Below, piece after piece: positions 13,153 through 61,908 of a stretch of DNA of 64,000 nt (the first letter of the stretch is position 1; the number at the start of each line of letters is the position of its first letter). Origin of the DNA: Takakia lepidozioides (Eukaryota; Plantae; Bryophyta). The notes under the pieces are model-generated. The model was not told the origin of the DNA. It worked only from the letters and a program-made list of their open reading frames with translations, and made no database searches. Position numbers and translations under genes: made by a program. Location of the stretch: contig CM060731.1 of assembly GCA_030704615.1 (NCBI GenBank), forward strand, positions 79,608,001 to 79,672,000, read 5' to 3'.

Positions 13153-13197
<45 letters not shown>

Positions 13198-13444: not shown

Positions 13445-13446
<2 letters not shown>

Positions 13447-27066: not shown

Positions 27067-28960
27067 TTAGCTATAGATGGTTGGGTACAATTGGCCCTCG
27101 CCCTCCAACCCAGGCGCCTTCTCAACACCCTGTGCGGTTTCCTCTTCCCCATGAACTCTTTCCTTGCGCAATGCATCTGCAAAAGACTCGCCTTCCTTTG
27201 AATAAGAATCGGAGTGCCCTGGTGAAACCTCGTCGACGCCTCTCTCATTATCTGCTGCCTTCTCCAAGCCACTTACAGGCGGTTCCAACTTTGGAGCATC
27301 TTTTTCACTCAAGCCACTTGACCTGTCTTTTGAGGTGACTTCATCATTTGAACCCTTGAAGTCTCTGGTGACAGAAGACTGCTCAGAAGGCATAGTAAGA
27401 GATTTATCAGCTACCTGCCGCTGTCTCTCCTTAGCCTCCTTGAGGCGCTCTTCATAAACCTTCTGCTTGGCTAGAATACGCTCTATCTTTGCTGCAATTT
27501 TCTCCAATTTTTTGGTTAGTTTTTCTACATCATGTTTCCCCTTCTCTTTCTTCTCCTTCTTTTCTTTCTTTTCCTTCTTCTCCTTCCCACCTTCCTCCTC
27601 AATCTTCAAGTCCTTCTCTTTGATGTTATCAGACTTCTCATTCTTTTCTCTCACCTCTTTCAGATGTTCACTTTCCCCATCCAGACTTTTTTCACATTTC
27701 TCCTTTTTGTCGTTCTTCTCTTTCTTCTCCTTCTTGTCCTTCTTACCTTCCTTCTCTTTCCCCTCCAGACTCTTTTCCTTCTTCTCCTTCTTCTCTTTCT
27801 TATCCTTCTTCTCCTTGTGGTCATCTTCACCTTCCCCTTCCAAACTTTTCTCCTTCTCCTTCTTTTCTTTCTTCTCCTTCTTCTCCTTCTTGCCCATCTT
27901 GTCCTTTCCATTCTCCTTGTCCTCCTCCTCCAAACCCTTGTCAAGCTTCTCCTTCTTCGCCTTCACCTCCTTGGTACCCTCTTTGGCATCCTCATCCTTA
28001 TCACCATTTCCCTCCGAGTGCTTCTCGTGTTTCTCTTTCTTCTCCTTGTGGTGTTTGGCTCTCTCTTCCTTCTTTTCCTGTTTCATCACATGCTCACTCC
28101 ACTCAGTCACACTCTGAATCCAGCCAGGAGATGCAGATCAGCAATGCAGAAAGTCCTCCATTTCAAAAGTGAAAATTCAGAGGTACTGAGGCTATTATTT
28201 TCTGAGTCAATAAGCCTCTACATGAACTAAGACAGGAATAGCTAGCCTGACGTCTTCACATGAATTAAAATGCAGATATAGCGTTCTTAACATAAATAGA
28301 GGACATGTAGTCTCATCAAGAAGTAGGATAAATCTTTAAAATCCATGTTCGACGCCAATAAGATGCCAATCTTAGTTCTGAAGCTATCCTGTACATGGAC
28401 TAAGGCAGGAATAGTTAGTCCGAATTCATTACATGAATTCAAAGCCAGATCAGTTTGCTTGACTTCTACAGTTGTGAGATTTGTCCGATTTAGACGTGGT
28501 GCAGACAAAATCCCAATGAGAGCTTCATCACTTACTCAAAACATCCAGTTGATGCATCTGGTGCCTTGTATGAGGAATATAGATGGAAGATCCCACGCAG
28601 TTCAAATCCAAGCTGGTGAACGAGCTAAACAGAGTGGCTACCTGAAAGTGCAATGGACTATTAAGGACGACATGGACCTACCGTCTTAGTCTCGTCAAGT
28701 TTGCCATGTTCTTGAGTCTTTCCGAGAGAATCGATTCCCCTGGTGGTAACCACTTCCTCCATTGCACTTTGAGCCTCTGATACCTCTGTGGTATTATCTG
28801 CTAAAACAGTGTATGGATTAGCTTCCTCCCCTGTGCTTCCTATCATTGGTTCCTCAGGAAATGCCACATCCTTCTGGATCTCTCTCACTTCTACATCACC
28901 CACTGGCAGCTCTGCTCCAGGCTTCTCCACTCTCACAGCCTCATCTTCAAAGTTTGTCAT
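27067..28960 (-). CDS. Lys/Glu/Asp-rich hydrophilic KED-like protein; ~441 aa; exons 28960-28682 and 28113-27067
   Basis: Two ORFs join in phase 0 via ACG|GTAGGT and TTCAG|AGT. Long KKE/KKD repeats are followed by the helix KLTKKLEKIAAKIERILAKQKVYEERLKEA, which resembles the conserved KED-protein motif. Confidence 0.75.
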
Positions 28961-40700: not shown

Positions 40701-40744
40701 GTTTTTGGTTGCGTAGGAGGCGGCCTCGTGAACGAGAAGGATAT

Positions 40745-40745
<1 letters not shown>
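37735..40745 (-). mobile_element. L1-clade LINE, 3' part (RT from NILLVHEA onward, zf-RVT, 3' UTR, A-rich tail)
   Basis: LDSEKAFDKVDW, VRQGCP, MFVDDT, LSITGRALVAN, CLPKKKGGLG, FLWQIANRVL..CTCC..EHCL. A-rich tail at ~37735-37771. Confidence 0.92.
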
Positions 40746-40795
<50 letters not shown>

Positions 40796-41007
40796 CTCCG
40801 GCCGAAGCCGGCGTAACTAAGAGCCACTTCGCCTTGCGGCTACTGCCCCTTTTCAGGGGTGGGCCCTATGTGAAATGCTGGTGCCCAAGGGACACCAATT
40901 GACCGACTGATGGAGAGAAACCCGAGCCAAGGGTACCACATGGTACCCAAGGGGACCCACGGGGTACCCCATGGGTATCCACGGGTACCTAAAGGCGACT
41001 GGGATAC

Positions 41008-44000
41008 CTAGGGGGCAAGAGGGGGAATAGATTCAAGCTGATGTTTGTTGGTAATGATAGCGGTAAGAGAGCAGAGCGCCGTGAGGTGTATAACTTTAAA
41101 GCATTTATGGATGGAAGTGAGAGGAAGTTTAAAGTTGTCTTGGAGTGCGGAGATGCTGGCATTATGGATGCCCCTCTAGTGCCAGCAGAAATGACAGTAA
41201 GGGGGCCTGTGGCCCATCCTCGCCTGCGGATAGCAAGGATAAGCTGTGCATATTTTTGGCGTTTTTTGAGGATAGAGGAGCTGGGGAAGCAGTCGTGGCA
41301 ATATGTAAATTCTATGAAATGGATGGTGTGAGTAGGGGACGGTTCAGTGGGTGGGAGCGTTAGTGGGAAGTCCCTGGACTAGAAGGATATCCGGGTAGAG
41401 TCGGGCAGGGCATTTGCAGGATGAGTGAGGACTGCAATTACAGGGAAGCAGCCAAGGTGGTACCGTATGGTCCGGGGGTCGGCTTTGATAGGTGCCTGCA
41501 TTGATGAGTGAGAACCATCGAGTGACATTACATTTGAGGAGGAGTTTATGGATATGCCATACTACGTGGTTATGTCGAGCAATACGGAGTCCGTGGATGA
41601 CGGGGTGGGGACAATTATTGAGAAGATGGGGCCATGTATTGCGGGTCACGTGAATGTGGGAACAGAGTGGGCAGTGCGGGGAAAGGAAGCGGGTGGGCCA
41701 GAAGGTGTGCTTGCGCTGATGACCCATGTATTGGGCGTATCTGTTTTTGAGGGTCTGTCGTAGTTGAGCATCAGATACGGCTTTAGTGTGCAAAAAGTGG
41801 TTTGATAGTTTGTGGTGGAATACAGTGGATTGGGTCCACTTTTGGATATGTAGTTTGGTATGGCTAAGAGAAGCCGAGGCTTGTCTATTAGCTTCTTTAG
41901 TCAGAGTAGAATGAAGGTTCCGGATTGGCCGGGGTTCTGATGGGTCGGGTACCGGGTGAAGCAGCCAAAAGGGGTGTGCATGTGCGATGTGGATGGGGTC
42001 TGCCGAAGGTTCAACTGGGGGTTTGGAGCCCAGTTGGGCGAGGAGGTCTGCCTCCTCGTTGCTGAGGATGCCCGTGTGGGATCGAACTTTGAGAAAATGA
42101 ATGGTTTTATTAATGGAGATAGCGAGTTTGATAATTGCAGAGATAAGGTTTCTATCAGGGTGGTGGAGGTGGGAGGAAGGACATGCAAGGTGGTTACGGA
42201 GTATAAAGAGTGAGTTTAGGCTATCCGTGAAAATGTAGTATGGTGGTGGGAACGAGGCTAATTGTGAAATAGCTTCATAAATAGCCATGAGTTCGGCCCG
42301 AAGTATGGTTGCAGGGCCCAGGAGTCGGTGGGCTGTCCCTGTGTTGGTGGCGGCATGGTATACACCGTACCTGGCATGGGAGCCAGAGTGGGAGCCGTCA
42401 GTGTAGTGTGAATGGAGTGGGGGGTATTTGGGGGAAGTAACCCACAGGTTAACCGGAGGGGCTTCATGGGAGATAGTATTGTGAAGGGTAACGGGGCGGG
42501 GGGGGTGTACTGGCCCAGGCTTTGCTAGGTTTTGTCCTGGAGCATGGTCTGGCGAGAGAGCTATGTGAGTCTAGAGACGGGTAGGTGGTGAGTAACATGC
42601 CATGGGTAACGGATAGGAGATGGGTGAGACGAGTGGAAATGTCTAGGGGTATAGGGGTACGGGAGGTAGCTTTGACAAGCAGGAGTAGGGCTACAGTGGG
42701 TTCCTTGTGGCGGAGGTATTTAGGAAAGGGCAGATTGTGCGTACAGCAGAGATGCTTGGGTTCGATGACAGCTAATGATGTCACCTCTGGGGAAAGTTGT
42801 AGAAGGGGGTGTTGGTGGTCAGGTAGGCGTTGTTGTGTGAGGATGTTGCGCACCTCACTTTGGTAAGCTCCCCCTCAAGTCATAGTTACTCGCTTTGATG
42901 TGCGCGCCTGACTCCCAACCGGCCGCCGGGCCAACTTGGAGCTTCGGCTGCTCACCGGGACATAACGGTCCCCCTTCGCTCTCCCGAAAGACCCTCCACC
43001 TATTTGGGCCTAGTGGAATTCCCTTTGGTAGATGGCAGTCCGGAACAGCTCCCCACTCTTTGGTCGCTTTCCGGTTCGCTCGCTTACTCACTAGTTTTTG
43101 GTCACCAACGGGCTTGCACCGTTCTCGGGGTTACTACTCCCTATATATACTTCTGTAGCTGTCCGCGGGGGTTTCACAACCAGCCATGCCATTTTATGGC
43201 GAACCACCACGAAGACCCTCGATTCCCGGTGGTGAGTCGCGGTGAGTCTTGGCCCGCTCACCACGGCCCCTATGGACCGTGATGAGTCCCAAGACTCCCC
43301 ACGACTCCCACCACGAGGTCTCCGCCCCCATGGTGAGTCCTATGCCACCCCCACTAAGTCCCACTAAGCTACCACCACCCCTTGTGGAGCCACCCCCACC
43401 GCAACCCGGTGTGCGGGGCTCCACCTAGTGAGCGCCTCCGCTTCCCTGAGTGCCTTGGGCACTCAAGGGTGCTTCAGCCCCCCATACCTATCGCTGCTGC
43501 TGCCCCCACCATAGGGGCAGCCCCTCATGTGTCCCGACCCCCTGCCCTCAAGGCAAAGGGCCGCGACAGAGGATGAGGATAGTGGATGCGGTGGGGGAGG
43601 AATGAGCGGCAAAGCATGCCCATAGAAGAGCTTCGTGTGCAAGGGGCCCCGGTGGCGGATGTGCCAGGCCGCCACCGGACCAAGTGTGTTGAGTGGCTGA
43701 TCCGAGGGCTCCGAATACACAGTCCCGGGGGTGCGGGCTGTCATAGGGGGAGATGTCAAGGGGGCACGTGAGTGGACTTGAGTAATATGAGTGGGTAAGT
43801 TGGAATGCGGTGATGAGAAATTTGAGGATGTCTGGAGGGATAGTGCCGTGGGTATAGGTTTGAGCTAGTTTGTCGGGGGAGCACGGTTTTTTGGTGGGGG
43901 TGTCACTTAGGTATCTGTCGAGAAGTCTTGCTTTGGGGGTTGTAACTGGCTAGTGGTGGTGGTGGGGGCGGTATATCTGTTCCAGAGCCAGGCGAGCCTA

Positions 44001-44565
44001 ATATGAGGGATAGAGCCGGCGAAGCGGCCGTTAAATGTATAGATGTTGGACGCTATGCGACTAGGACATATGATGGGGGAGGTTTGGTCAATATCTTTGT
44101 CGGGGTTGCATTCAAAGATTTATATATGAATATTAGTTGCGACAAGGGGATTACGAATGTAGCGTGCATCTATCAACTGGGTTTGGGAGACATGATAGTG
44201 GTGGGTGTGTGCCAGAAAGTTGGTGTTAGTTGTTTTGTGGAAACTTGTGAGAAGGTCACGGTTATGGGCTGGGTCACAGTCTTCGTGGTTCCCAAAAAGG
44301 TCATCTTCGATTTGCCAGGTATTATCTTCTGTAGGGAATCCTGCCCATTTACAGAGATAGTAGGTATCTACACAGGCGGCACCGAATGAGTCTAGCAAGA
44401 TTAGGGTTTTGATACCGAGGATAGCTTCAATAACGAAGGCATCGAGGTGATCAAGGTTGGTTAGGTGAGGGACAGTCGGAGAGGTGGAAGATAAAGAGGG
44501 GCTAAGGAGGGGGTACGGGAGTTGGGTTGTTGCGGTATTGGGGGAGGGAGGTGATAGATACGAGT

Positions 44566-44601
<36 letters not shown>

Positions 44602-47600
44602 GGGGGCGAGTTGGGTTTTGCTGCTGGAGAATTGAGGTGGCAGGGGCTTTACGAAATTGTGGAAGGAGGTCTTGTTTGTGGTGTGGGAAGAGTGAACACG
44701 AGAGGTCACAATCAATGGTACAAGCAGTGGTCGGGTGCGGAGGTGTAACAAATATCGACGGGTTTTGATAGTAGCCCGGGAGTGTTTTAGGGTAAATTGG
44801 CACGGGGTGAAGAGCCTATTCCCAATAGTTGTAGTGAGTTGGGCAAGATGAGTAATATGACGAGTTTTGAAGTACGCAAGGATAGATTTCCTTTGACGGG
44901 GATGTGAGTTGCCAAATTGTGAGGAGAATGGACTATGAAGCCAAGCACGTTCAAGTGGCGATATAGAGTTGGGGAAGCCCGGGAGGTCGGTTTGTATGCT
45001 GATTCTCATTTGGCATAGGATGAACAACGATCGGGCAGTGGGGGAGTGGAGACAGGATTGGGAGTGGAGGGTGGGGAGAGAGTATAGTCCATTATATCTA
45101 GAGGCCAGGTGTTTAAGGAGCCCACTAAAAATCAGTCCGAGGCGGCCAAGATCGTTGAGGGCTTCTAGCAGTTGTGACCCCAAAGTGCGGGCATAGGAAA
45201 TAATTAAAGGGCTGGAGCCTATATAGTAGCTATCTTGGGGGAGCTGAGTGAGGGCGTTCGGGGTGCTAGTGGGTAGGCCACATATTCGTTTGGTGAGTTG
45301 GGTAATTTGTTGGTCAAGCTGTTTGATGTCTGGTAAAAAGAAGGGGGTTGCGTGGCAGGCGTATTAGACTTGTGGTTTGAGAACTAACTGGATTATGGCT
45401 AGTTTAGGGCGGATGGAGACTGGGGATTTGAGTAGGGCGAGACTCTTATTTTTTAGTTTGGAAAAGGTTGTGTCCCTCTGTATTTGCCAAGTGAGTGACG
45501 GGACCAGTTGTATGCCCAGATAAGTGTAGGGTTCGTCCGGGCCTAAGAACGGGAAGGGTTTTTATTGGTAGTGTATATGGAGCTTACAGTGGGAAGCTAT
45601 CGTGGATTTTGTGAGTTTGCTACGGTGTGTGGCTGCAGTGACCGCGCACTTATGAAGGCTTAACTCCATACCAGACCATTGATTGAAGCGGGATAATTTG
45701 TCCACTTGGCGATTGAGATGTTGCGGTTAGTGTGCAATGATGGCAAGGTCGTCCGCATAAGCTGCTGAAGAGATTTCATTGAAGGATGTTTTGTATTGAT
45801 ATCCTAGGTTGCCTCGGGCGAGCCATCTTAGCAAGGGTCGAGGAAAGTGATAAATAGGTAAGGGCTAAGTGTATCCCCTTGGATGGTGCCACATAATATG
45901 GGGATAGGTGGGGTGGATCCATAGTAGGAGCCAGAGTATTCGGTGGTGCTGTTGGTGTAGATATTACCAATGAGTTGGATAGCATCTATAGGGTATCCAA
46001 GCTCTGTCATAATGGCCAACAGGCGGGGATGGTCCAGTGAACCAAAGGCATTTTTGAAGTCAATATAGAGAAGATAGATATCTTGTTTAGTAAGTTTAGC
46101 GTCTTCGAGGGCAAAGATAACATATTGTATTTTCCGGGTAGTGCTACGTGTTGCTCGAAAGCCTTCCTGCGGGTCGCTTAAAATACGGTGTTGTTCGCCA
46201 TAGGAGGATAACATCGCAGTTAGTGTGCTGGTAAATAGTTTGTATATGGTGTTTGCAAGGGCTATGGGCCTGTAGTTACTAAGGTCCGTGGGGTCGCCTT
46301 TTTTAAATAGTAGGATGGTCCGGCTATGCTTCCAGGCTTGTGGTATACGATGTAGTCGGTAGCATAGGTGAAGGAATTTAAATAGAAGAACATGAAATTG
46401 GGGGTCAAGTGCTTGAAGTATGGCATTGGGAATGAGATCTGGGCCCGGGGCCCTAGCTTTGGAGAGAGCTTTTAGGCATGATTCATGTAAGTCAGTCGTG
46501 AAGAGATCAAGGATACGGTCAGTGGGGGAGCCTCGCTTTTCCAGTGAGAAACCGTCGAGATCATGCCAGGGGTAGTGTTTGACTTTACAGATGCAATTGG
46601 GTGCGTGGTGGGTGGGGTGAAGACAGTTGGTAACGTTAGGTGTATAGGAAGACGAGGCCTGGAGCCAGATCTCTGTGTTGATGTCAGCGGGTTTCGTTAA
46701 TAGGTGGCCTAGCCTGTGTCTGAGGCAGTCGATGGGTGGGTTGATTGCAGGGTTGAAGATGGCTTTGTGGGCCCATTTAGGGTGTTCATGGAGCAGTTGG
46801 CCAAAAGAGGCGACAAATTTTTTGTGGTTGGCGGAGGCTTTTTGTTTTGTGATAATATAAGCAGATTTTTTGGCTTCTCGTCCAAGTTTGGAGAGGGAGG
46901 CGGTCCATTGGGGAAGAGAAGGTGGGTCCTCAGGTGGGGGCATAATAGATTGACATGCGGGGAGAGTGTTCAAACAGGTGATGCGGGGGTCGGTTCTCCG
47001 GTTATTATATGGCGGGGTAGAGGAAGGAGCTATGATAGTAAGAGCCCGGCGTATGGTATGGTAGATGTTGAGGTGGGAGATCCATTCATGTTTCTGGGTT
47101 CGGGTGAGGTAACCCCCGTTTTGTTTCGATCGAGTGGTTTGGGGGAGGTCGGGAGGGGCGGAACATGTGGCTAAAACACTCTTAGTCATTTCTTGTATTG
47201 TAGATGCGAGTATGGACCCAACTTCGATCCAGGTGGTATCAGGGGAAGAATATAGGTTAGTATCGGTAAGTATGTGAGAGATCTTGTGTATAAAATTTGA
47301 AGAGGTAGGGTGGAAATGTTTTTGGAAAGCTTTGATGTTACATAGGGGTATTGGGGAGAGGATTCTAGGCTGGGGTGAGGGGGTATGTATATCTGACAGG
47401 GGTTGAAAGGGAATGAGGGAGGGAGGGAGGTACACGGTTATCGGGTAGTGGTCCGAGTTACATAAGCTATTGATGTGGACGTGGCTTATGAGATATGACG
47501 GAATTGTATTAACGGTTTTGAGGTAGAAACCATCAAGAAGGTTTAAGGAGGAGTAGTTAAGACCCCCTTGCCTAGAGTAGTGGGAGTCCGCGGGAATGTA

Positions 47601-50600
47601 TTTGAGCTGTAATAGGTTGGTGAATCGAGCCCATTCGTGGTCGGCTGGGGATGGTGGTTTGTGAGTTCCGTTGTATGAGTGTCCTTGTAGTGTGATGCCT
47701 CTGTTGAAGTTGCCGGCTAGTATGACATGGTAGTGTTGGTTATCTGGGTGGGTGACTGTGTGGGAAATAGTGTTTAATAAATCAGGTGTGAGGGGGAGGT
47801 CGTCGGTATGTGAGGGCATATATAGGTGGATGAGGGTGATAGGGCATAATGCTGGTGGGTGTAGGTGGATAATTTGAAGGTGCGAACGAAGGGGGATAGG
47901 AATGGCAATTTTGGTGGTGGTACTAGGGGAGTGATGTGTCTTAAGAATTCCAAGTGCTACTCCACCCCTAGTGGGTTTGTATGGTGCAGAGCGGCGCGAG
48001 AGACACTGCTGGGCCGTTAGGGGGGTGCCATATAAGAGGAAGTAATCGGGTAGCAATTTATTTATGTAGGAGCTGCTAGTATTGTGAGTATGTAGTTTGG
48101 TTTCTTATAGTAGGAAGATATGTGGTTGCGAAGAGTGGGTGAAGAGATGGAGTAGGCTTGGTATGCTAGTGGCTAGTGAGCCCACGTTCCAAGAGGTGAT
48201 CGTTAGTGTGTTGGGGCAGTCGCCGAGAATAGGGAGGGCGCGGTTGGGAGAGGGGGCAAGTGAGGGTTCCTCAGTAATGGCGGTGGCTGGGGGATCGTAG
48301 CCGGGTATCGGGGTGTAGACTGCTTGAAGTGTGGCAGAGAGGATATCATTGGAGAGGAAGGGGAATTGATTGGTGATGCGACGTTGGTCTAGGTCGGGCG
48401 TGGCTACTGAGGCGAGGTGGTCCCCGAGGATTTTATGCACTACTCCGGGTTTGGAGTTCAAAAGGTTAAGCGAGGTGTGGATTGCGGATAGGGAGTGTGG
48501 AGCGGCCAGGTAGTTGTGGGAACGTGGAGGTAATCTTTGTAATTGGTGAAGGAGGGAGCGGATCTGGGGGACTGAGTGGGAGAATAGGTATCCATTACAG
48601 GTCTCTGGGAGAGGGGAAATGAGGATGATAAGGGAGAAGAGGATATGTGGCGCGGGGAAGGATTTGAGTCTTAAGAGGGTTTTAGAGAGTGCCGGGTAGC
48701 AGCTGGACGGTAGTCCAAATGTTGTGATGTATTGCGTATGGTTAGTGGGTTGGTCGCATGGGAAAAATGGGGTGAAATGGTTGACAATGTGTCGATAGCT
48801 GCGCCTGAGCGACACAATGTCTGGTTGGAAGTATATAGCGTATCTGTCTTGTGCGTCTATGGGGAGTTCTTTGATAATATCGTTAATGGTGGTAGGGCCC
48901 GGGTTTGGTTGTATGTCTCCGCATCGTAATAGGATGAGGTCAGAGCAGGTATCTATGTAGGAGTTATCGGGGAGGGGGGATGATGGTGGTAGTGTTTGGA
49001 CCTTCCTAGGTGTAGTGGGTATCCGCCGTGTGGGCTATGGGTAATGAGAGGGGGCTGATGGGTATGGCGAAACTGTGTAAGAGTGTGAGGGTAGTTGGAG
49101 GGAGCGGGGGTTATGTGTTCAGAGGATTGATGGGTAGAGAACGGGGTAGAGTAACTTGCATGGGTGGAGAGAATAGGAGGGATATATTGAGTATACCTTG
49201 GGAAGGGGGATGTATATGGGTGCCCAGAGGGGAGGATGATGCAGATTGTGGGTAGGGGTTTTGGATGAAGTTCGTTCATCCATCCGTTAATAAGGGGCTC
49301 CCAGAATAGTGGGTGCAAATAACTAGTGGTATAGGGGACGTCGCCAGGGCAGACGTCGCCAGTAGTTAGGTAGACGTGGCATGTTTTGAATTTTGAAGCG
49401 TTGGGAGACGGGGCTAGTCCATGATCCATCGGGTGAAGGAAGGTAGTAAATTGCGGGAAAGGGTGTTTGTGGAAGGTGGTAAGCTGCGGGACAGGGTGTT
49501 TGTAGAGGCGCAACAGATCGCAGGAGTTCGCTGGCCAGGACATCAGAGAGAGAGAGCAATGACTAGTAGTTATTGGAGAATGTTTATATTGCTGCAGGAA
49601 GGTGTGATTCGAGCAGAAGTGGTCGGCATGCTGGAGCTCGATCAGAGCTAATGGGCGGTATTGACCAGTCTGTACATCAAGCGCGTTGTTGGCGTCACCC
49701 TCTGCAATTGAGGAGTTAGTGATGCCTGGTGGCAGGGGTAACTTGGCCAACACCACGTTAGCATGGTGAAAGAAATTCGCTAGATTCACTCCAAGATTCT
49801 GGGTGATCGATTCCTTCAGAGCCAACAGATATGCATGGTGTTCCTCCTATTGCTTTGTCAAGGTGGTGGCCACCCGCGATTCCATTGCAGAAAGTTCTCC
49901 ACGAATATCCTTTCTTATCGATATGGCATGAGCAGCTAGTTTTTTGTCTATCTCAGACATCATAGCTTCGTGACCACGAGAAGATTCCGAGTCTGGTTTG
50001 ATTGCAATTGAGTTCACCGTGTCGGCTAGCGCCTAGTTGATGTTTGCCTCCCGGAGCCTGTCGAGAATTTCCTTTGCCGGTGGTACAGCTCCATTCAGAC
50101 TGTTGTTATGTGGCTCGAAGTTGATGTAGCGGTCGATGACCAACACATGCGGTTTGTTGACCCACTGTGTGTAGACACTGGGGTTTTTGCACGTAATCAA
50201 GATCATGCCAGTGTGCTTGATCTTCTCTTCAGGAACAACCGAACAAAAATAGATTTGTGTGATGTTGTCTTTTCCAAAGATAGAGTGCAAGGCGTCCTCG
50301 ATAGCTGCCTGTGGATGCAGTTGGTTGAGATTTTTCACAATGAGCGTAAGCGCGTTTCTCTCTGCCACGATTTCCTGTGGGGTAGCTGTTAAACCCGTCA
50401 TGCTAGTTCGCCGAATTCGCAGCTGTGGTCTGATCAGCGTGAGAATCGGATGCCCTGTGTCAGCATCCTTGGTTTGGTGTCCTCGGAAGTGACGTATATG
50501 AAGCATAACTTGGACTCTGGCCCAATCTTGCGAGTGTAGAGGATCTCGTACTCATCACCATGAACGTGAGCTTCCATGATGAGATGCATTGTAAGCTTGT

Positions 50601-51762
50601 GGCTGATAGTTCCGTGTAGGCTTTCGCTTGTCATGTATAAAGAGAGATGTTCCATTGTCGATTGTAAATCGAATGCTTTTTCCACCTTACCTTGCATTGG
50701 TATGCCAGAGGACATCTCTATGACGAAGGCTCGGTCGCCTTTCAAGAGAGCGATGTCGTCCCTGGCTGGATGTATCAACTCGACCTTGAAGATGCCAGTC
50801 CAGTGCTTGCTGGCATGTTTGGAGTGGGCCATAATGGGCGAATACAGCGTAGTACCCAGTGGAATGTTCATCGCTGCAAAACGCTTCTTAGCCCTATAGA
50901 CAGCCTGTTCTTTGGGCATGTCGGTCTCTTTGTCAAACCTGATCAGAATGTGGTAGGGCGTCGCGGAGAGTCCAGAGACAAGGTCAACGATGGTGCCTTT
51001 TGGCAGTTGAGTAAGCTGGTAGAGTTGGCCTTCGCGACCATCCGGTCGAGCTATAGGGAAAAATAGTTGGGGTACGTGCGGGTAGGCCTTGAGGCCATGT
51101 CGCAGTTCGTATATCTCAGACGGGCAGAGCCCAAGCAGCTCGAGTTCTCTTGTCGTGCGTTTCTCCGTGACAAATGGGAGTTCAGCATCGTGTGCGTGTT
51201 GTTCAAGTGTGTGATAACCCATCCATAAGAGTGGCCCTCCTGGCGAGCTTGAAATTTCTAAGCATGGAGCTGGATCTGGCGAAAGAAATCCCCGTGATTT
51301 TTTGGGGTCGGAGTGGGTGCTTCCAGCCTCGCTGTTGAATGCACTGGAGGCACGCTTGTTGTGCGGGCTGAGAGTCAATGGCTGTGCAGGAGGCGCCTGA
51401 GTGTCATGGAGCTGGGTCACCCGTTGATTTTGTGTTGATGGTGCTGGGGTTGGGGCAGGTTTGTCGTGGACTTGAGCACTGTGAGACTTTGTCTTGTTTT
51501 GTGTCGAGTGAGTTTGATATGCTTGTGGAGTGGCGAAGAATTGTTCGTCGGATAAGTGCATGTCACTGACTTCCTCGTCGCCATCAAAGTGCTGGGAAAT
51601 TTCTGCATTTGCGTCATTGTGGTGCCCCATTTTTGCCGAGAGTCGCTGAGCAAGGAAGTTCACCGGAGATTTAGAGCTGAACATAGCCTTCCCTTTGTGC
51701 CTTGGCTGTTTTTGGATACTCCTCGAGCTTTTTTGGATACTACTAGATTTATTGCTAGACAT
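41008..51762 (-). pseudogene. Disrupted polyprotein of the Dualen-like element: RRM-like, APE, RT, chromodomain, MTase-like, RNase H, CCHC, restriction-like endonuclease
   Basis: RRM-like LTLIVKNL…GMILITC (~50100-50350). APE TSWNVGS (~48190), IFLL*ET, ILAGNFN, SDHYPI (~47440). RT YRPIAL, IDFKNAF, GTIQGDTLSP, YADD (45748-45759). Chromodomain 44237-44437. RNase H YTDGS/RAEL/FTDS/KVRSH/NEEAD (42028-42405). CPLC..H..C, RHN, YPDILLV, then after a frameshift IEFTY, KRQKY, GW, GTRG. Stop at 41008-41010. Confidence 0.88.
42844..43568. mobile_element. 725-bp solo LTR inserted in the Dualen-like ORF
   Basis: TGTTGCG…CGCGACA termini, 5-bp TSD GAGGA (42839-42843 and 43569-43573), central TATATATA (~43142). 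Excision restores the frame STILIL|TQQRLP. Confidence 0.92.
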
Positions 51763-52422
51763 GTGTGGAATTGAAGAGATTGAGTGAGGAGGGGAGATAG
51801 GGGCTATGTTGAGCCTGCAAAGTTTGTCACTGCCTGAAGAATGAAGGTGAGAGTGTGGGGTAGAGATAGAGAGAGGGCAGAGGCTAAGGGGTTGTGAGTG
51901 ACGCGGTAGAATATCTATAAGGAGAGAAATCGTTAGTGGACTAGCTGTGAAGGCGCCAATGTGATAACCATTCTTGATTGTGCCGTTAGAGTGACATCGA
52001 ATCAGACATGTGTTGGCTGCGGGCTGGGGCCATGACGGCAGAGGTTTTACGGCGGTGTGTAGGAGGTCAATATGTAGTTCATAGCAGAGTGGGGATGGGG
52101 TGATAATGTCATGTTGTGTAGGGGCCGAAAGAACGGCGGAGGTATGCTCTGAGCGTAGGGTGCTTTGATGAGGAAGGGCAGGAGTATTCGCTGCAAAGGA
52201 GAGAGCGTCTGGGGAAGTGAATGTTTTTGGCAGATCATGTTTATGGGGCCTACTGCACCGTTTTCCTGGCTGTTGGTGATTATGGTGTGGCAGGGAGGTA
52301 AATTAAATGTCGTTGCAGGGAGCATTGGTGTGGAATCTGAGAGCTTGTAATTAATGGTGTGTGGCTGCTGTGGAGGAGAATCATGATATGTGATGAACGA
52401 GGTGAAGTGATGTGGTGGTGGC

Positions 52423-55400
52423 CTAGATTTGGGAAAGTGGGGTATAAGGGTGGAGAAGCTTGAGTAATTCCCAGCAGTTCCATGACGCATGTACATTTGT
52501 TGTTGCATGCTGTGTGGGTATGGCAGGAGAGGTCGTATGATTACTGTGGAGACGTGCCAAATTGTGGTGTAACGCAGGAGCGAGTATCCTAATACATGTT
52601 GGGCTGCTCGCCTTAGTGGATGCGTAGGCGCTAGCAAATTGGCAGAGTTTGCCGGGTAAACGCATGATATAGGGCAAGCAGTGATTACATAGGGGCAGCA
52701 GAATTGAAGGGAGAGATGCTTGTAGAGTTGGTAAGGCCTGATACAGAAACACCTTTTGTGGGTTATCAGGTAGGGATGTGGGGTGGTTTGTGTCAGTTCG
52801 TGATACTTTTGGGATAAAAGGTGTGGTGTTTATAGAAGAATCAATGCAGGTGATACAAGGTAACACGGAATTTGCAGTACGTGTTGGGTGAGCCCAGGCA
52901 CTCCAGAGCATGTTGGTCGTAGACATGAAGTGTGATATATTGTAAGGAAAGCACTCTGTGCGATTGGCTTGCAGTGTCTCGTTTTTACTAGCACAGATTG
53001 TGGTGACTGGCAACGCTCTGTAAGTATAAAACTGAGGTACCAGGGGAAGGGCTCTTGGTAGACGGCATGTATAATTGTTAATGAGTATGATGGAGCTTTT
53101 TGGCACCCTAAGACACAGAGAGGCAGCTCTCCATCGTGTCCAACCATTCTGGTTGTGTGGGAGATGATACTTGTGAGGGTTGGATTTAAAAAAGGCTATA
53201 TTGTATTGCCGAGGGCCTTTGGGTGAGACACTTAGTGAGAGAAAAGGTTCAAGATAACAAGAATACAGATTGGACAGAAACTGCATACGAATATTGATCT
53301 GAGGACTTGTTGGGATAAGTAAATAGTGGCAGGTCTGAGTGCCATGGAGATGAGGATGCCAATGTAAGGGGAGCCAATCTCTGGGGAAAAGATAACATTT
53401 CCGAGAGCCTTGTGAGGGGGGTATGTGGAAGCAGGAGCAGGCGACATTAACTAGATAGCGTTCAGGAGAAGAATAATGCGATTGGGACTCAGACTGCATT
53501 AGATTATTGTTCCTAGAATCGTGTGGGATAAGTATACAATAGCAGTATCGAGTGTCATGATTGAGATAACAAACATACGGGTGGGACACAAACCACATTC
53601 GATTATAGGTCTGATAGCCATGTGGGATAAGTAAATAGTGGCAGTTTTGAAAGCCATGTAGATGATGATACCAAAGTAAGGGGAGCCAATCGCTAGGGAG
53701 AGAACAGTGTTTCTGAGAACCTTTTGAAGGAAGTCTGTGGGGGCATGTGTGTGCAAAATAAAGATAACATTCGAGAGAGCAATAGTGCGAATGGGACTGA
53801 GACTGCAATAGATTGTGACTCCGAGAACCGTGTGAGATTAGTATGTGATAGCAGTATCGAGTGTCATGTAACTGGGGGGGACAATGAAAGGGAGAATGGT
53901 TACTGGGGAAAGGACTCCATGAGATCACATCAGCCGACATTTGATGTGCATCATTCAATCTCCTGTGAGAGTAACTTTGGTGCCTTTGTGCTTGTGACAA
54001 TTGAGCTGGTAGAGATATTGTTACCTCTTCAGCAGTTGGCTGGTTGTGTAACATATCCAATAAGCCTATGTTCTTCTTCTCCTTGAAGTCCACCAGGACC
54101 TGCTGCTCAGCCTTCACATTGAGTATACATATCAGAAGCACGCCATGCTTGCCAAAAGTAGTTTTAGGATGGTGTTGATGGCGCTTCCAGTAAAGTTGGA
54201 GCTCATGGGACTGACTCAAGTTTTTGTGTAGCATTTGATGACAGGTTGCCAAAGCCTCCAGCCTGTCCATCACTACACCGGCCTCCCGGATATTGTCGTA
54301 TTTGTACCGAAGCTGTTTTTGGGCACTGGCTGGCAGACCTGCTGGCAACTTATTTACAAACTTGGGGCTGGAATCAGTTAAGTGATTGTCATGGATGTAG
54401 ACCCCACTTCGGGCCCTGGAAACACACCCATGTTCAGCATATCCAGCAATCAATGTAATCCATGAGACCACAACGCGTTCAGTCAACTTGTCAAGCATTT
54501 GGCATGTAGCCTTTGTGCTCCCGCATTCGGCATACGTGGCAGGAGGGGCAGTCTTCAGATTGGTATCTTTCATAATGCCGGCTTTAATGATAACATCATG
54601 AACCTCCTTGCCCGATATCTCAGAGAATATGTACAAACCTTGCAGCTTACTTTCATGTGTGGGGTTGGAAACAAGTAAGTGGCTGCCACAGAAGTAGACC
54701 CCACATCGGGCCCAAGATACTAAGAGAGGTTCCATATTGAGGGTGGCTGTTACACAAGTAGCTTCCCTCAGCTTTGCATGGAGCGCCTCTGACTGCTCCT
54801 GTTTCATTCGTGTGTGACTCTCTACCTCTAGTGAATGCTGCTGCAGCAACAGCTCATGCTCGTTCAGGTGCAGCCAGTTCATCCGCTGCAGCACACGCTC
54901 CTCAATTGGGTCAGTTGTTGTAAGTGTGGCGGTGTTTTGGAAATCACAGGTCCTCTGAGCAGCACCCTTACTTTGGTAGTAGCTGTTCAGTGCATATGAT
55001 GCATGGGAAGCCCTCGTGTTGGGTAAGTAACATGTTCCCTTTGATTGTATGGCTGAACAGTTGGCCCGACCACAGGCATAATCCAAAGCAGCTTGCAACA
55101 TACTATCACTGGCCCCCTGTATTGCAGCACACCGAGTTCTGCTGGTTGTTGAATTGATGCCTACATCTGGGATGCCAGTTCTAGTTAGGGCAAGTGCGTA
55201 AACGACAGACAGGTAGGCATTGAAGACACCATGGTTCCACTGCAAGGTGGGGCTGACGCCCTTATCCTCATTGAAAATTTCATAGAGAAATGTATCGATC
55301 ACAATGCCATGTCTGGCAAGAGGCCCAGTCTTGTTAAGCATATGCTTGATGAGATTGGTGTTGTAGGTTTGGGCAGTTGAAGCTGACACTCCAACCTCAT

Positions 55401-57185
55401 TAATATCCCCCTGTGTTGGCCACCCAGTCTCACTGATAACAACTGTGACATCTGAGTGATTAAGTGCAGCGATGGCAGTGTAGACATCATCCAGAATAGC
55501 AACAACCATGTTGGACGTGTGGAGGAACGCAGTGGCTGAATTCACATCACCTCGGTTGGGCTCGAATAGTGCATACTGAAGGGATATGACCTGTGAGTTC
55601 TGCTCATAGGCTGTAGAGGGGTATGAATTGAGCATGAAGAGAGACCCTGTTTCTGACAAGAAGTCCAGCATTGGTCGAATTACAGTCGTGGCAAATGTGC
55701 TGTTGGAGGTGCTCCTGGAGGAAGGGTAGGGGCTGCTAAGAGACACCACTGCGTAGGGGGTGGACACTTTGGTTTGCCCAACCAAGCCATTGGCCACCAG
55801 CCCTGAGTGGATGCAGTTCCTGGTAGGGAGTAGCAGCAGTGCAAGCGATGAATCACCAGTGGGGACCTCGTTGCCAGCGGCAATAGCAGTGATGTTGCAA
55901 GTCGATGCAAAGGGTACAATGTTGTGCTTTACCCATGTTGAGGCGGATGAATTGCTCTCGCCCAGGCTCAACGCCTCGTCGTTAAGCATCCCCCCTGCTA
56001 GCCGGATGTTTGAACCTTGAGAGGCCTGCATAACTATGTCATTTGTGTCGTAGATGCGCACATACAAAATACCCTACGTCTTCAGCAGCTGAGCCTTCTG
56101 CTGCGGTGCTGGCAGGTTGTTGCCGTTGGTTCCATAGTTTAGTCCTTGCGCTTGTGTATTTTTGAAGCCGTTGCACTTGCGCCGCACCATCACGTCGCAG
56201 CCCTGAGCCACATACTCGGTCTGTCTCGCAATGCGCCAGGTGTAGTCTAGCGTGTTGATCTCGAGGCTGTTGTGTGAAATCTTCATGAAAATGGGCCAGG
56301 GCAGGAGAACGGCTACCTGCTCCCAGCTGTAGGCAGCGTGAATCTTGACAGAAGGCCAGCATGTCGGATCGAAGTCATAGATGAGAGACCTCCTTGCTTT
56401 TGGTCAATGAGGGAATAACAAGAAACAACGACGCTTGGTTACTCCAACGCATACAAAGGGCGGAGCTGAGATGATACCTTTTGTCAGGCGGCGGGGCTGG
56501 AAAGCCGTGTGTAGGGATTGGGTTCGCCCATACGGAAGAGCTTTGAACTGGGGGAGCAGCCATGTTGGTCGAGCAAAAGAACTCCAGCAGCAGCGCACAG
56601 CCGAACCCTTCCACCGTCGGCAGCCAGTACTTGTGGTGTTGGAGAGCTCCAGCTTCGCACACGCGACAACAAAGTAGCTCCATGTATCGAGAGTGCAGCA
56701 GCATGCCGCTCTCGGAATCATTCTGCCCAACGTTGGCATTGCTATGCAAAAGCTCGAGCAGGGTCGCCTGGGCCCAATGCGGGCGGTAAGCTTGCGAGAA
56801 GGAGCTCGAAAAGCGCACATAAGGGTAGAGGTGATAGTAGTCAACATCAGAGCCACACGGCGGCTGGCTGTTTCTGCCATTGTTGCCTGAAAACTTGAAA
56901 GGGGGGACTTGAGGCCGCACTTGGCGAAGTTTCTGCGCGGGGTCTCTTCGAAGGTACGGAGAGGGCAGAAGGATATGCATTGTGGTCGCAGCTGGAGCGA
57001 GCTGGCTGGTGGCCTCCCCGATATGAGAAAAGTACCTTGAAAAAACAAAGATATGGAACCAAACGAAAGCTGTTGTAAGATAGCTTAAATTGAGCCTGGG
57101 AAGGATGTTGAGCTTTCTAGGCTGGTGTAGAAGAGCATGGCGGTGGCAGTTGCGTAGCAATGGAGTGAGCATTAGTCCCCGCCAT
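52423..57185 (-). pseudogene. Chimeric cargo ORF: unidentified fragments, GH17 beta-1,3-glucanase plus X8, coiled coil, PLS-type PPR repeat, His/Cys/Tyr-rich tail
   Basis: GCCGCCATGG start at 57185. Stops at 57117-57119, 56404-56406 and 56074-56076 plus one inferred frameshift, then 1,214 open codons. Motifs GLNYGTNGNNLP, VRIYD, AGNEV, SETGWP, LQAALDYACG..C..I..C…CDF..TATLTTTDP, and GKEVH…YAECGS…VVSWITLIAGYAEHG. Confidence 0.8.
53251..53868 (-). repeat. Diverged in-frame 309-bp (103-aa) tandem duplication
   Basis: HDTRYCY…DWLPL…CHYLLIP…CYL occurs twice, with unit starts at 53868 and 53559. Confidence 0.9.
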
Positions 57186-57365
57186 GGCGGCAACCCAAGC
57201 TAAAACTTAAGCAGAGGATAAACTGGCGGCATCACTAATGGGATAAGGAAATATTAACGTAATTGCTAAAAACTTTGGTAGAACCCTAAATAATAGTCAT
57301 GGTTACATAATATAGCTAAGGTAAGCGGCGGGAGCGCTCCGGGAGCGCTAAGGTGTACACATACC

Positions 57366-59250
57366 GATATTGTCAAGAATATATCTTCCCTTAACAAATC
57401 CAGCCTGCCCTGTTCTGATCAGTTGAGGAAGGAGGGGCTGGATACGAAGGGCTAGAGCCTTGGCGATGATCTTGTAGGCCACATTTAAGAGAGTTATTGG
57501 TCTGTAGTTGTCGATACTTGCTCTGTCTCCTTTTTTGAACAGAAGAGTAATAACTCCCTGAGACATGGCTTGGGGCATATGGCCATTGGCCTTTATTTTG
57601 TTGGACATGGCACAGAAATCCCCCGCTATGTGAGTCCAAAGAGCTTTGTAGAACTCTACTGGCATGCCATCAATGCCTGGTGCTTTATTATTGTTCATTT
57701 TCTTCAGCGCGTCTTCTAGCTCCATAGCAGTGAAGTCTTCCCCAAGGTAGAGGAAGTCCAAGGAGTTTAGTTTAGTGGGCACTACTTTCAAGCACTCTTT
57801 GAGCTTGGAGTGGTGAAGAGGGTCTTTTGGGTCTTTTGGGTCTTCCTGGAAGAGACTAGAGAAGTGGGAGAAAGCCAATCCACACATTTCTCTTGGATCT
57901 GATGTTGTAGAATGCAAGTTTTCAGAATGAAATTCCTGAATTCTTAGGATGGATCTGCGGAGCTTGACCTTCTCGAAAAAGTACTTGTACATTTTTTCGC
58001 CTTTAGCTGACCAGTTGATGGAGTTTTGACGTGCTTCCGGGCAGGTAGAGAGCGTGTGATCATCGCAATTAGAGGCTTCGATTCTCTTTTGGCAGACTCC
58101 GAGACATTTCTGAAGAGCCAGAGTCTTTCTTTTCCGCTCTGCCAAGATTTGTCTATTGAGTTCTTGACTTGCTTTGCTTGCAGCCACCAACTTAGCTTGG
58201 AATCTTTGGACGGGGCACAAGATATTATATCCATTTTGTGTCCAGGCATCCCTATGGCCTTGTTTGAAGGCTTGGATTTTAAGGTGGCTGGAATTTAGCC
58301 TGTAAATGCCTCTCCCTCTTTTTCTAGCATTAGGCATAGAAATAGTGCCAGAGACACATGTATGGTCAAATCCCTGTGCTATGGGGTCTTGAGGGTTAAG
58401 AGAGGCTCCATTAGAGATTGTCAAGGAAACGTAGATCCGATCTGATCTGGCCATGCTGAGCTCTTGGAGACAACGATTATTTGTCCAAGTGAAGGAGGGG
58501 TTGCATCCTCCCCGGCGGTTCAACGCATTGTCTATCTTTGCAAGGCTGTGGGTGTGCAGAAGTGACTCCCACTAGGTTTGCTCTTCGTGGCAAAGCTGTC
58601 CCGGGCTGGACCCTATTCTGTCTGACTCTTTCTCTACCATGTTGAAGTCACCTCCCATCACCCACGAGTGGGCAACAGATCTGGCAGAGATTTTTTGATT
58701 GATAAGTTGCCATAGAGTGGCTCGTTCTGAAGGGTTGTTGGGAGCGTAGATGTTTATGAAACCTATGGGGTCTAGGTCGCTTGGGAGCTTCAGGGAGCAG
58801 AATTGAACACGTCCTAACATCCAGGTTTCTTCTGCTATAAGGAATGGTTTGAGGGCGGGGGAAAGGAGGATTGCAGTGCCCCCTTTCGATCCTTCGTAGG
58901 AAGGTTTCCAAAGGGCCGCATCGGAGGGCCAGAGCTGGTCGGAAAGGTTGGAAATTTTAGAGTCCGTGAGCTTGTGTTCCTAGAGGAACCATTGCGTCTC
59001 CCTGTTGCAGAGGGCCAGAGCTGGTCGGAAAGGTTGGAAATTTTAGAGTTTGTGAGCTTGTGTTCCTGGAGGAACCATTGCGTCTCCATGTTGCAGAGGG
59101 CCAGCCAGGTCCGTAGTTTGAATTTTTTTTAAACCATTTGCTTTGGAAAAACAAAGCGAGAGAATAAGCCAAAGTTGGAGAGAAGGAGGGCTCGGAGGGG
59201 AGTGGGCTTAGCTTTTGCGAGGGAGAGATGCTCGCTATGAATGGAGACAC
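57366..59250 (-). mobile_element. L1-clade LINE, 5' part (APE endonuclease and start of RT), continuous with 37735-40745
   Basis: FLQEHKL, INIYAPN, MGGDFN, FTW, DRIY, KAPGIDG, NYRPITLLN, QAGFVKGRYILDNI. The 5' boundary is uncertain (GC-rich sequence continues to ~59760) and no ORF1 was recognised. Confidence 0.9.
58924..59104. repeat. 86-bp tandem duplication bounded by GAGGGCCAG microhomology
   Basis: GAGGGCCAG at 58924, 59010 and 59096. It frameshifts the LINE endonuclease. Confidence 0.92.
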
Positions 59251-61908
59251 CCAGGCGTACAGAGCTTGGCGGCTGGAGTTAATGTGGTTAGGATTATGAT
59301 TTCAGAGATGGTCGGGAAGGGATGAAGGTTCATCTTTGTCAATCCATGCGCAGATGAAGGGTACTAGGAAGTGGAGGAGGATGGGCCGGGGGTTTTTAGT
59401 TGTCGTTTTCCATGGTATTTTGGTACGTTCTAGGCAATGAAGATGAAGACAGGTTTGAGTAAGGTTTAGGCTGTGAAGGTCTGGGACAGATAAGGGCTCG
59501 ACTTGCACGAAGGACTTCTGCGTTCCAAGGAGCGAAACAGGGTGATGGAGCTCATTTCGATCGATTGAGAGCTTGTTGGGGAGGATTTGGCAAGCTGGTG
59601 CTGTTAATGGTGTTTTGCTTGGGAAGCTTCGAACCTGAGCAGCTCAATGGCGTAGCACGAAGGAGGTGGAAGGGGCAAGGGACCGTTGAACGTCTCTCTC
59701 ACTCTCACTCACCGCAAACCGCGGAGCTACATCGCTCCGACCAATCTCCCCTCTTGTCCATATTTTAAGAAAGTTGGATGGTCTCCACTTATTAATAACT
59801 AATAATTACCAATAATTTGTATTTGTTTTTGTAATTTTTACCTTTCTTTTGACTGGTTTGTTTGTTTGTTTGTTTTTTTTTTTTTTGCCTTTCAAATGCC
59901 TTGACAGGCACAAAAAGCAGCTTTGAGGAAAAGGGCATGAGTGGAGGGCCTCCCACCATTTGAGGGCCGTAGAGGAGGGCGGTAGCCGAGGCCAGGTCCC
60001 GAAAATGGTGGAAGGCCCGACATGCGGGCCCTTCCCCTACGTAAAGAACTGCCCGCAAATTTGCCCCCTATTTCTTTCCACCATCTTTATGTTTCCAAGT
60101 TTTGTTCAAGTGACGTCACATGATGTGCTGGCTTGTCAGAGTGAACGGCCATTATGTGCTTGAGCCCAGTAGGTTCCTCAGCCAATAGCACCAAAGAAAC
60201 ACTTAGTTAATGTACGAAAAAAATTGCTAAATGGATTTTCTACAGAAGAAAACATCCTTAAAAGAAAGACGCAGAAAGAAAAAAATTGAAGTGTAGCCTT
60301 ACGAATTCGGAAGGCTCCTGCCGCAAAACAGTAGTAATCCTACAATAACGTAAGATCACTATTTGTAAGGCATCGTCAGATTGGAGATTGCACCATGTAG
60401 GGCGACTAATTATACACAGCGCAATTCTCGGGCAGTTCTTTACGGTTGGGTTAGGGTGTTACCCCATATTCCTGATGTACCCCTCATGGACCTTACATGG
60501 TAATTTTTCCATGTTCTTTTCATATGATACAGGGCGTCCGTCCCCTTTCTTAAAAAAAACGCGTCTTATTTGTAATGATTGCAGGGGTGAGACCTTGCGT
60601 GTCACCCATACATTCGAGACCTTTGATATCCATTGTAACACATCTTTTGGAGTTTTCTTTCTTTGATGATTTGTTGGCTAGCGCAAGAGCATGATCTCAC
60701 CAACTCTCTATGGTCTCTATGTTCTTTATAGTTCTTCCTCTCCTTGTACCATATTTCTCTCTCGAATTTTATCGCTTTTGTACGACCTTGTTATCACCAC
60801 CTAAAAAGGGGCATTACCCGCATGGGGAAGAGGCTCTTATTTACGTTAGCTTTGGCTGGCGTCATATATATATATCACCATCTTGAAAAGCAGCCACTGA
60901 CCTAGCATCTACCCTAGTTCAGAAGAAATCAGTAGAAGTGAGAGGACAACATCATGGAGACGTGAGTAGCGATAAAATTGAAAAATAAAGCTAGATAAAC
61001 AGTAAAAAAATAAATTTATTGCATAGAAATCTAGTAAAATAATAACCTTGTAGGATCCTTTCCAAATTGCAAAGGAGCAGCTGACCTCTACCATAAGTTA
61101 GCTGCTGACATGGAAAACTAACTGCCATGTAGGATAGTTGACGTGGAAAACCTAAGGCCCTGCTAAGGAGAGGAGGAATGCAACAGATGATAGTTAGGTA
61201 GATTCAAAAATTTTAATCTTTGGGAAAATATGCCACAAGTTATGGCTTAGGTTTTTGCCTTACTGAGGGTTTTTCCCACAAGTTTTTTCATCGATAGATC
61301 TGTATTTATGAACGTGGGTGTGAAATACCTAGCTATGGCAACTCAAACAGACCAACAATTCAGTATGTATATGCCAGATAGCCACGGACTGGGAGGCATG
61401 GAAACTGGCATCCACGAAAAGCTTGACCAGGCACTTCCACCGCCTAATGTAATGTAATCGCTCAGGGAAAAGAATAGCAGTCAATTTGGATCTCTTGGAT
61501 CGGGGAGGAATTCTTGTGTACAACATTCACAGCTTGGCAATGCGAGTCCGAACCCGTTCAGGCTCCTTGTGATGCAACACGTCTCACGCAGATGCAGGCA
61601 GGAGGAATCACGGGCAGGCAGGTGAAGGATGCCGATGGACCCTACCATCGCACCTAATCAGCGTCCGTGCGGCAACAGAACACGATGAGCCGTACATGGA
61701 GCCGTACATTCCATGGAGTGGAGTGGGAAAGTGGACGCAGCAACGTATCAGTTGGAACTGTGAAGGAAAGAGCGATGACGCCTATTCTTTTTGCTGAAAT
61801 GGGAGGGTGATGCATCTTCTGTGTCAATGTCTGCAAAATTTATGCTGAGAAATAGACCGTCGCTGCTAGCTGTAATCCTCAAGAGAGCCGTAGAGAATCG
61901 CAAAGCAA

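Follow-up and report, generated by a model that had tools for sequence, protein, structure and literature searches.

In the genome of the moss Takakia lepidozioides, a retrotransposon that lacks long terminal repeats (a non-LTR element), or long interspersed nuclear element (LINE), carries at its 5′ end a mosaic of host-gene pieces joined within one open reading frame (ORF) of 1,216 codons. The element lies on the minus strand of the 64,000-nucleotide window analysed here (positions 79,608,001 to 79,672,000 of contig CM060731.1, assembly GCA_030704615.1; coordinates below are those of the window, and features are collected in Table 1), and its cargo combines two internal exons of a GH17+X8 glucanase gene with a fragment of a pentatricopeptide repeat (PPR) gene. 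The reading put forward here, to which we would give an even chance, is that a spliced 5′ transduction brought these pieces into one giant frame with the first gene of the element, ORF1, and that this frame was selected for translatability in the LINE lineage. The single giant ORF, the translation-based selection and the order of the captures we infer from the features described below. The locus is probably a rare case of a plant LINE picking up upstream host exons, represented by a single decayed copy.

The sequence between 57365 and 40746 is one insertion. Its target is an older LINE of L1-like type that runs in the same direction (minus strand; 57366-61500 and 38100-40745) and retains the last part of its endonuclease region, the reverse transcriptase (RT) and zf-RVT. 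The protein of this target is cut in the middle of the RT at ...GRYILDNI and continues 16.6 kb downstream at LLVHEAASYA...; in the Pfam alignment of this flank, the match breaks off at RVT_1 profile position 54 and continues at position 55. The same 6 bp, AATATC, stand on both sides of the insertion as a target-site duplication, the inserted sequence ends in a (TC)n tail, and self-comparison of the window found no LTRs. The split RT, the duplication and the tail together therefore identify a single retrotransposed unit, whose front third is the region under study, and since the cargo lies inside it, the cargo travelled with the LINE RNA. Consistent with a 5′ transduction, the host-derived GH17/X8 and PPR sequence (56145-54243) is found within the target-site duplication, in sense orientation and in its native frames. 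The L1-like flanks are themselves decayed, with 1.4-2.7 disabling events per kb, and include two tandem 95-nt units (58924-59104) that are 96% identical.

The glucanase module matches the Pfam models Glyco_hydro_17 (E 1.8e-48, profile positions 30-304 of 306) and X8 (E 3e-19) over ORF residues 3-381 and in the ORF frame, as the original prediction had proposed from the letters alone, and its similarity to GH17 proteins extends from G-L-N-Y-G at the start to T-T-T-D-P at the end. Contigs of an expressed paralogue, 88-95% identical, match the window only between 54906 and 56145: at the 54906 end a paralogue contig continues with 56 further, unlike letters, and at the 56145 end the alignment stops with just 15 letters remaining. 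Exon borders of Sphagnum and Ceratodon GH17 genes, read from tblastn pieces and local DNA, place a phase-1 intron after the signal-peptide exon, immediately before ...GVNYG, a second phase-1 intron after ...DP(S), and a third intron that splits the X8 domain. Both limits of the module, 56145 and 54906, are first codon positions that coincide with these moss phase-1 intron sites (56145/4 and 54906), and the intron between exons 2 and 3, within X8, is missing from the module. These limits, together with the missing internal intron, therefore show that the module came from spliced RNA, its joins on either side having arisen when a chimeric transcript reading into the element was spliced; template switching onto a chimeric spliced RNA would leave an identical pattern. 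Both catalytic glutamates (GNE and SETGWP motifs) are kept. The cargo is not a complete GH17 gene: exons 1 and 4 are absent, a TAG at 56076 interrupts it and core residues are changed. A search with the mosaic (692 aa) recovered ordinary GH17+X8 proteins only, the best being a Sphagnum protein at 55% identity over residues 1-388.

The second host-derived piece is short. When ORF residues 383-1214 were compared by phmmer with 1.84 billion representative sequences, all 3,429 matches were PPR proteins and fell on residues ~485-552; this flooding by PPR proteins hid any signal from other parts of the same residues. The Pfam PPR model reaches the cargo only at E 0.25, below the cut-off, and about two motifs are recognisable by phmmer, which characterises the piece as a PPR gene fragment and not a PPR gene. 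The expectation that unrelated fragments had been fused in one frame is thus borne out for GH17+X8 and for PPR, both of which lie in frame within the long ORF. One 50-nt PPR motif (54423-54472) recurs in about a hundred contig-equivalents of a DNA run of the same species (depth 3,752); this species thus has a very large number of PLS-type PPR genes, as would suit a plant whose organelle RNA is heavily edited.

The remaining pieces resemble nothing known. The G-poor tail of the ORF showed no detectable similarity to PPR or to other known sequence, and the idea that it is a decayed PPR array was rejected, as phmmer against 150 PPR proteins scored the tail no better than a shuffled tail. The upstream piece (226 aa) had no relatives in Pfam or in the protein search. 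It overlaps the A-poor stretch 56400-57200, where several of the six frames are open, and its openness therefore carries little weight.

The openness of the long ORF itself is non-random. The annotated ORF (56067..52423, minus strand) comprises 1214 aa counted from a TTG, in agreement with the 1,214 stop-free codons claimed at the outset, and the full stop-free run is two codons longer. In 2,000 dinucleotide shuffles of the long ORF, each frame held 49 stops on average and the longest open run reached 308 codons, against 0 stops observed; the two other sense frames of the actual sequence have 39 and 65. The G-poor tail alone (the last 524 codons) contains 0 stops where 19.5 are expected, the minimum among 2,000 shuffles being 7. 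G-poor composition, which the original prediction had named as a possible cause of the open frame to be compared with the observed stops, is ruled out by these shuffles. Upstream of the long ORF the frame meets only three stops, TAA 57087, TGA 56406 and TAG 56076, and each of them does lie one C-to-T step from a sense codon, as had been noticed (TAA from CAA, TGA from CGA, TAG from CAG); the column of TAG 56076 is glutamine in both Sphagnum homologues. The position given for the start of the frame, 57185, has to be corrected: it is not a frame boundary, and the frame opens past TAA 57087.

Downstream, the same frame meets four stops within 120 nt (52425, 52383, 52353 and 52305), after which it reopens down to 50436, the end of ORF1. 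The long ORF and ORF1 accordingly share one frame, with this 120-nt patch as its sole interruption. Two frame changes bypass the patch by way of an alternative frame that is open over 261 codons (52832-52049), and a contig of another genotype has one T fewer in the T-run at 52807-52810, which shifts the reading into exactly this alternative frame. Contigs of the other genotype also differ at 52506-52521, with 4 substitutions and 3 extra bases in 16 nt (net +3 at 52509-52511). The differences at the T-run and at 52506-52521 may be polymorphism or local assembly error, and with them the long ORF would end at 52049 instead of 52425. The simplest reading of these frames is that the progenitor had one frame running from at least 56073, perhaps from ATG 56880, to 50436. 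The shared frame also fits the suggested coupling of translation to the downstream ORF.

In the module, amino-acid drift has accumulated with little breakage of the frame. Among 84 columns that are unchanged across nine homologues (from mosses, lycophytes and a liverwort), 18 (21%) are altered in the cargo GH17/X8, compared with 2-12% in each real homologue when it is left out in turn. The losses of conserved residues that had been pointed out, RPG to RHG and, in X8, TWC to TRC, are among them. The cargo sits on a terminal branch of 0.85 changes per site, where the median is 0.3. Its 14 best-supported differences from the paralogue contigs divide into 11 non-synonymous and 3 synonymous ones, with the conserved residue in the paralogue. 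The module nevertheless contains one stop (TAG 56076) and 0 frameshifts, and wherever it is longer or shorter than its relatives, the difference is a multiple of three. The two tail repeats, similarly, differ at 26, 24 and 24 sites in codon positions 1, 2 and 3, with no stop and one 3-nt indel; their ratio of non-synonymous to synonymous change (dN/dS) is 0.53, compared with 0.87 and 0.63 in the wrong frames.

Simulated random substitutions, used for calibration, give ~0.3 new stops per kb for each 1% of divergence. The loss of invariant residues implies ~8% divergence on the cargo lineage, at which 2.4 new stops are expected in the module (probability of none, 0.08) and 5 in the whole host-like part (probability 0.005). 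The stop density of the ORF2 region, ~0.8-1 per kb, corresponds to ~2-3% divergence since insertion. The drift of the cargo therefore seems, for the most part, to be older than the insertion and to have taken place with the frame kept. We regard this drift without breakage as suggestive of selection for openness only, not as proof of it.

Openness since the insertion is a separate matter. Disabling events were counted by a minimum-cost path through the three frames, which found 18 in the 9.1-kb ORF2 region, 8 of them within one possibly non-coding stretch of 1.9 kb, and 4 in the 6.65 kb between 57084 and 50437. The neighbouring polyprotein is indeed broken repeatedly, as had been stated: its frame changes several times and contains 7 or more stops. 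The contrast drawn between this decay and the open cargo, however, is not significant (p 0.07-0.3), and protection of the long ORF while its neighbour decays was rejected as a candidate: when 12-22 disabling hits are placed at random over the element, a gap of at least 3,648 nt appears in 32%-7% of trials, and in 43-77% when only stops are placed. If the frame was intact at insertion, its later survival therefore needs no special protection.

These observations would fit the following course of events. An ancestor of the element would have been transcribed together with host exons before the sequenced copy arose, and exons 2 and 3 of the GH17/X8 gene would have been spliced, at their normal sites, onto sequence that already led into the element, namely the PPR fragment and the long low-complexity leader ORF of the element itself. 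In the progenitor, the joined pieces most likely formed one frame of ~1,900-2,150 codons ending in ORF1. LINE RNA is copied preferentially by proteins translated from that same RNA, and because of this cis preference only versions with an in-phase, stop-free upstream frame could have yielded ORF1 protein and propagated, leaving the amino-acid sequence of the passengers free to drift. After landing in the old L1-like element, the copy would have undergone ordinary decay, the 1,216-codon run being the longest surviving gap between disabling events. A broader form of this proposal, in which a Dualen-type lineage extends its first frame by repeated 5′ capture of host sequence, spliced internal exons among it, and keeps it open only for the translation of ORF1, is more tentative.

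Evidence on related copies comes from short-read contigs of the DNA run, aligned at 80% identity or more; such contigs can miss copies, and most LINE copies are 5′-truncated. Depth is that of a single copy (30-49) over 52200-54000, 56000-56600 and 57200-57400, and higher over ORF1 (105-210) and the GH17 part (up to 169). Second contigs, 87-96% identical, cover 56750-57340 and 51740-52200; apart from these stretches, second contigs occur only over the gene-family parts. Scans of metagenome contigs for the junction pattern and the tail-repeat pattern gave no match. In another sample, a run that is probably RNA provides near-identical contigs, one set over 54272-54903 with 2 differences and another over 55658-57074 with 11 in 1,417 nt; its coverage extends over 54000-57074, with none over the tail or the ORF1 leader, and its contigs are strandless. 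The coverage ends where the G-poor tail starts, as it would for a transcript with its end near 54000. Present-day transcription of the mosaic, into a shorter RNA, is thus probable, the RNA status of the run being a guess. At 51739-52057, the only DNA-run contig differs from the window at 12 of 319 positions; of the 9 differences listed, a third sample (X8) carries 5, and a plant-metagenome contig that overlaps 51739-51849 carries only one. Either a pair of diverged haplotypes or conversion by a sibling copy could account for this pattern.

Several points weigh against selection for an open frame in the LINE lineage. The individual probabilities are modest (0.08 for no new stop in the module, ~0.05 in the case of the tail repeats), the glucanase part may already have drifted as a host paralogue, prior to its capture, and an in-frame join has a 1-in-3 chance each time, a phase-1/phase-1 module keeping the frame easily. 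ORF1 has its own ATG (51762), and in the sequenced copy four stops part it from the long ORF. No second carrier of the tail, of most of the cargo or of the junctions was found at 80% identity or more in the DNA-run contigs, and neither blastn nor tblastx found a sibling copy in the 64-kb window, so that lineage selection is deduced from a single copy; the "active family" with cargo that had been assumed is accordingly not supported. The current transcript, to judge from the probable RNA run, lacks the tail and is not the full-length RNA of the element. The idea of selection for a translatable frame is thus partly supported, by the amino-acid drift, the open frame and the frame shared with ORF1; the contrast with the polyprotein and the active family are not supported.

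The same points lend some plausibility, short of making it probable, to a one-off chimeric retrocopy with unselected cargo, arising either from read-through with splicing or from template switching, its pieces in frame by chance and its age low enough for the frame to have survived. In this reading, selection would only ever have acted on the tail and ORF1 as ordinary coding sequence of the element. A depth of one copy across the tail and the greater part of the cargo, the lack of a sibling in the window and the absence of the whole-mosaic protein among 5.8 billion proteins would all be expected of such a copy; chance alone could have set the junctions in frame, gaps of 3.65 kb arise after insertion in the trials described above, and at 1-2% divergence the probability of no new stop is 0.07-0.27. 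What this explanation accommodates poorly is a module at ~8% divergence, against 2-3% elsewhere in the insertion, that has one stop and no frameshift, together with an expressed paralogue that keeps the conserved residues.

Near-identical contigs of the probable RNA run over the host-like pieces, with none over the tail and ORF1 leader, would also suit a takeover by the host after insertion, as a transcribed chimeric gene or a non-coding RNA under host-level selection. We consider this improbable, given that the RNA status of that run is guessed and its contigs are strandless, that stops 56406 and 56076 lie in the transcribed part and leave the long ORF unreachable from upstream ATGs, that differences between genotypes in the ORF are mostly non-synonymous, and that conserved enzyme residues are lost. 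Even less likely is a role as decoy or small-RNA source, also raised in the original prediction, by which the glucanase and PPR pieces of the cargo, sharing ~90% identity with host genes that are expressed, would interfere with them. The identity to the GH17 paralogue contigs and the probable transcription of the mosaic are circumstantial here, and the reported uptake of host genes by telomeric LINEs of Drosophila (PMC13534243; TART and its relatives) offers a precedent; the cargo is in sense orientation, however, and interference gives no reason for an open frame of 1,216 codons. That the mosaic is an artefact, a chimeric join made by the assembler, is very improbable indeed: the window does differ from short-read contigs by ~0.8% and by small indels, such as that in the T-run, but independent contigs run without a difference from the L1 flank across the 5′ junction and, in a 1,417-nt contig, from the upstream piece into GH17, and every 200-nt bin of the stretch under study is covered in the DNA run.

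Table 1. Features of the LINE insertion and its cargo, in transcriptional order (window coordinates)
Feature	Coordinates	Strand	Remarks
Upstream target-site duplication copy, AATATC	57366..57371	(-)	Final two codons, N and I, of the RT flank of the older L1-like element
LINE insertion including cargo, Dualen-like	40746..57365	(-)	16,620 nt; single retrotransposed unit
5′ leader	57088..57365	(-)	Stops in all frames
Upstream piece	56146..57084	(-)	Open in the ORF frame save TGA 56406; first in-frame ATG 56880
GH17+X8 module, exons 2+3 of a GH17 gene	54906..56145	(-)	Intron-free; interrupted by TAG 56076-56074
Long ORF	52423..56073	(-)	Stop-free run 56073-52426, 1,216 codons, then TAG 52425-52423
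Linker	54706..54905	(-)	Starts at the exon-3 donor position; no detectable relatives; the putative coiled coil of the original prediction
PPR gene fragment	54243..54705	(-)	Native frame; core 54618-54412, weak similarity across remainder
G-poor ORF tail	52426..53900	(-)	Start approximate (53900-54050); G-poor like the rest of the LINE
Tandem repeat in tail	53252..53868	(-)	Two units of ~312 nt (104 codons), 76% identical, one 3-nt indel
Four-stop patch in the ORF frame	52303..52425	(-)	Both other frames are open here; simplest reading, a patch shifted in frame
Open codons before the ORF1 ATG	51763..52302	(-)	180 codons, same frame; ~4.9 stops expected
ORF1	50434..51762	(-)	442 aa; ATG 51762; no known family; multi-copy in the genome
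ORF2 region	41347..50551	(-)	Broken; RT 45831-46300; RNase H 41347-42570
Chromodomain between RT and RNase H	~44280-44430	(-)	E 2.1e-6
PCIF1_WW-like piece between RT and RNase H	43551-43949	(-)	E 7.9e-5, below the Pfam cut-off
3′ microsatellite tail, (TC)n	40746..40795	(-)	
Downstream target-site duplication copy, AATATC	40740..40745	(-)	L1-like RT resumes here

By the type of its RT, its target-site duplication and its (TC)n tail, the carrier is a non-LTR retrotransposon. Its RT matches RVT_1 (E 3.5e-16) and is followed by a match to RNase_H (E 1.2e-12) in Pfam, and in a sequence search of the Protein Data Bank (PDB) the best solved relatives of the RT were R2 proteins (1.8e-19), then L1 ORF2p (3e-8). 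Neither Pfam nor PDB sequence searches of the open pieces detected an endonuclease upstream of the RT in this broken copy. Searches with ORF1 were similarly unrevealing: Pfam returned nothing for ORF1 or the tail, the protein search found no relatives of ORF1 with its leader (622 aa), and an Atlas look-up of ORF1 gave weak, unnamed matches only. The Dualen/RandI clade (Kojima & Fujiwara 2005) is defined by the possession of both an APE-type and a restriction-like endonuclease, and microsatellite 3′ tails have been reported for RandI. The carrier, here called Dualen-like, resembles this clade in its microsatellite 3′ tail, in the RNase H that follows its RT and in the closer match of that RT to R2 than to L1, and differs in that both defining endonucleases went undetected in the broken Takakia copy. 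In the few papers on Dualen/RandI covered here, neither a cargo of host exons nor a giant first ORF came up. Elsewhere in the window, on the plus strand, stretches at 12000-14000 and 26000-28000 are C-rich and G- or A-poor, and 13200-13440 gives proline-rich, low-complexity tblastx matches to positions 44480-44690 of the LINE; these stretches may be pieces of related elements that run the other way.

Among plant transposons, Pack-MULEs, Helitrons and LTR elements such as Bs1 are already known to capture host genes. What the present locus adds is a clean example at the level of coordinates, in which glucanase exons cut at splice sites and a PPR fragment lie within the target-site duplication of a LINE and are fused in frame with its first gene. 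As it stands, one dead copy has small direct biological weight. If related copies were to confirm the pattern, plant LINEs would be able to shuffle exons through RNA, and the locus would be a natural test of an upstream frame kept open solely for the translation of a downstream element protein; if the broader proposal of repeated 5′ capture in a Dualen-type lineage held, it would represent the first 5′ transduction by a plant LINE, a route of exon shuffling and a case of translatability selected without protein function.

In comparison with known systems, the nearest precedent for the mosaic is maize Bs1, and the nearest mechanism that of human 5′ transductions. In Drosophila telomeric LINEs, the captured piece reportedly acts via small RNAs against the host gene; there, too, a LINE holds a host-gene fragment as part of the element, but small-RNA action needs no open frame. 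Bs1 is an LTR element with a hybrid ORF to which three host genes, a beta-1,3-glucanase gene among them, have contributed fragments (Jin & Bennetzen 1994; Elrouby & Bureau 2001, 2010, as summarised in PMC13317346). It shares with the Takakia element a plant host, several host-gene fragments including a glucanase, a hybrid frame joined to an element gene and exon shuffling that would proceed via RNA; it differs in being the LTR element of a flowering plant whose hybrid gene is reported to be transcribed and translated. The Takakia copy, by contrast, is a dead one read from its sequence, with a non-LTR carrier in a seed-free plant and with captured pieces that are placed 5′ and in frame with ORF1. 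In human L1 5′ transductions and in SVA/MAST2, an upstream host promoter and exon are reportedly transcribed, spliced into the element RNA and copied. The SVA subfamily with the spliced first exon of MAST2 was described by Damert et al. 2009 (cited in PMC13317346), and according to the same 2026 review (PMC13317346) 5′ transduction has not been reported in plants. The human cases resemble the Takakia element in that host sequence stands at the 5′ end of the element and inside the target-site duplication; whereas they add a short non-coding or first-exon piece, the Takakia element has taken up internal coding exons 2 and 3, with a fragment of a second gene, in a frame of 1,216 codons.

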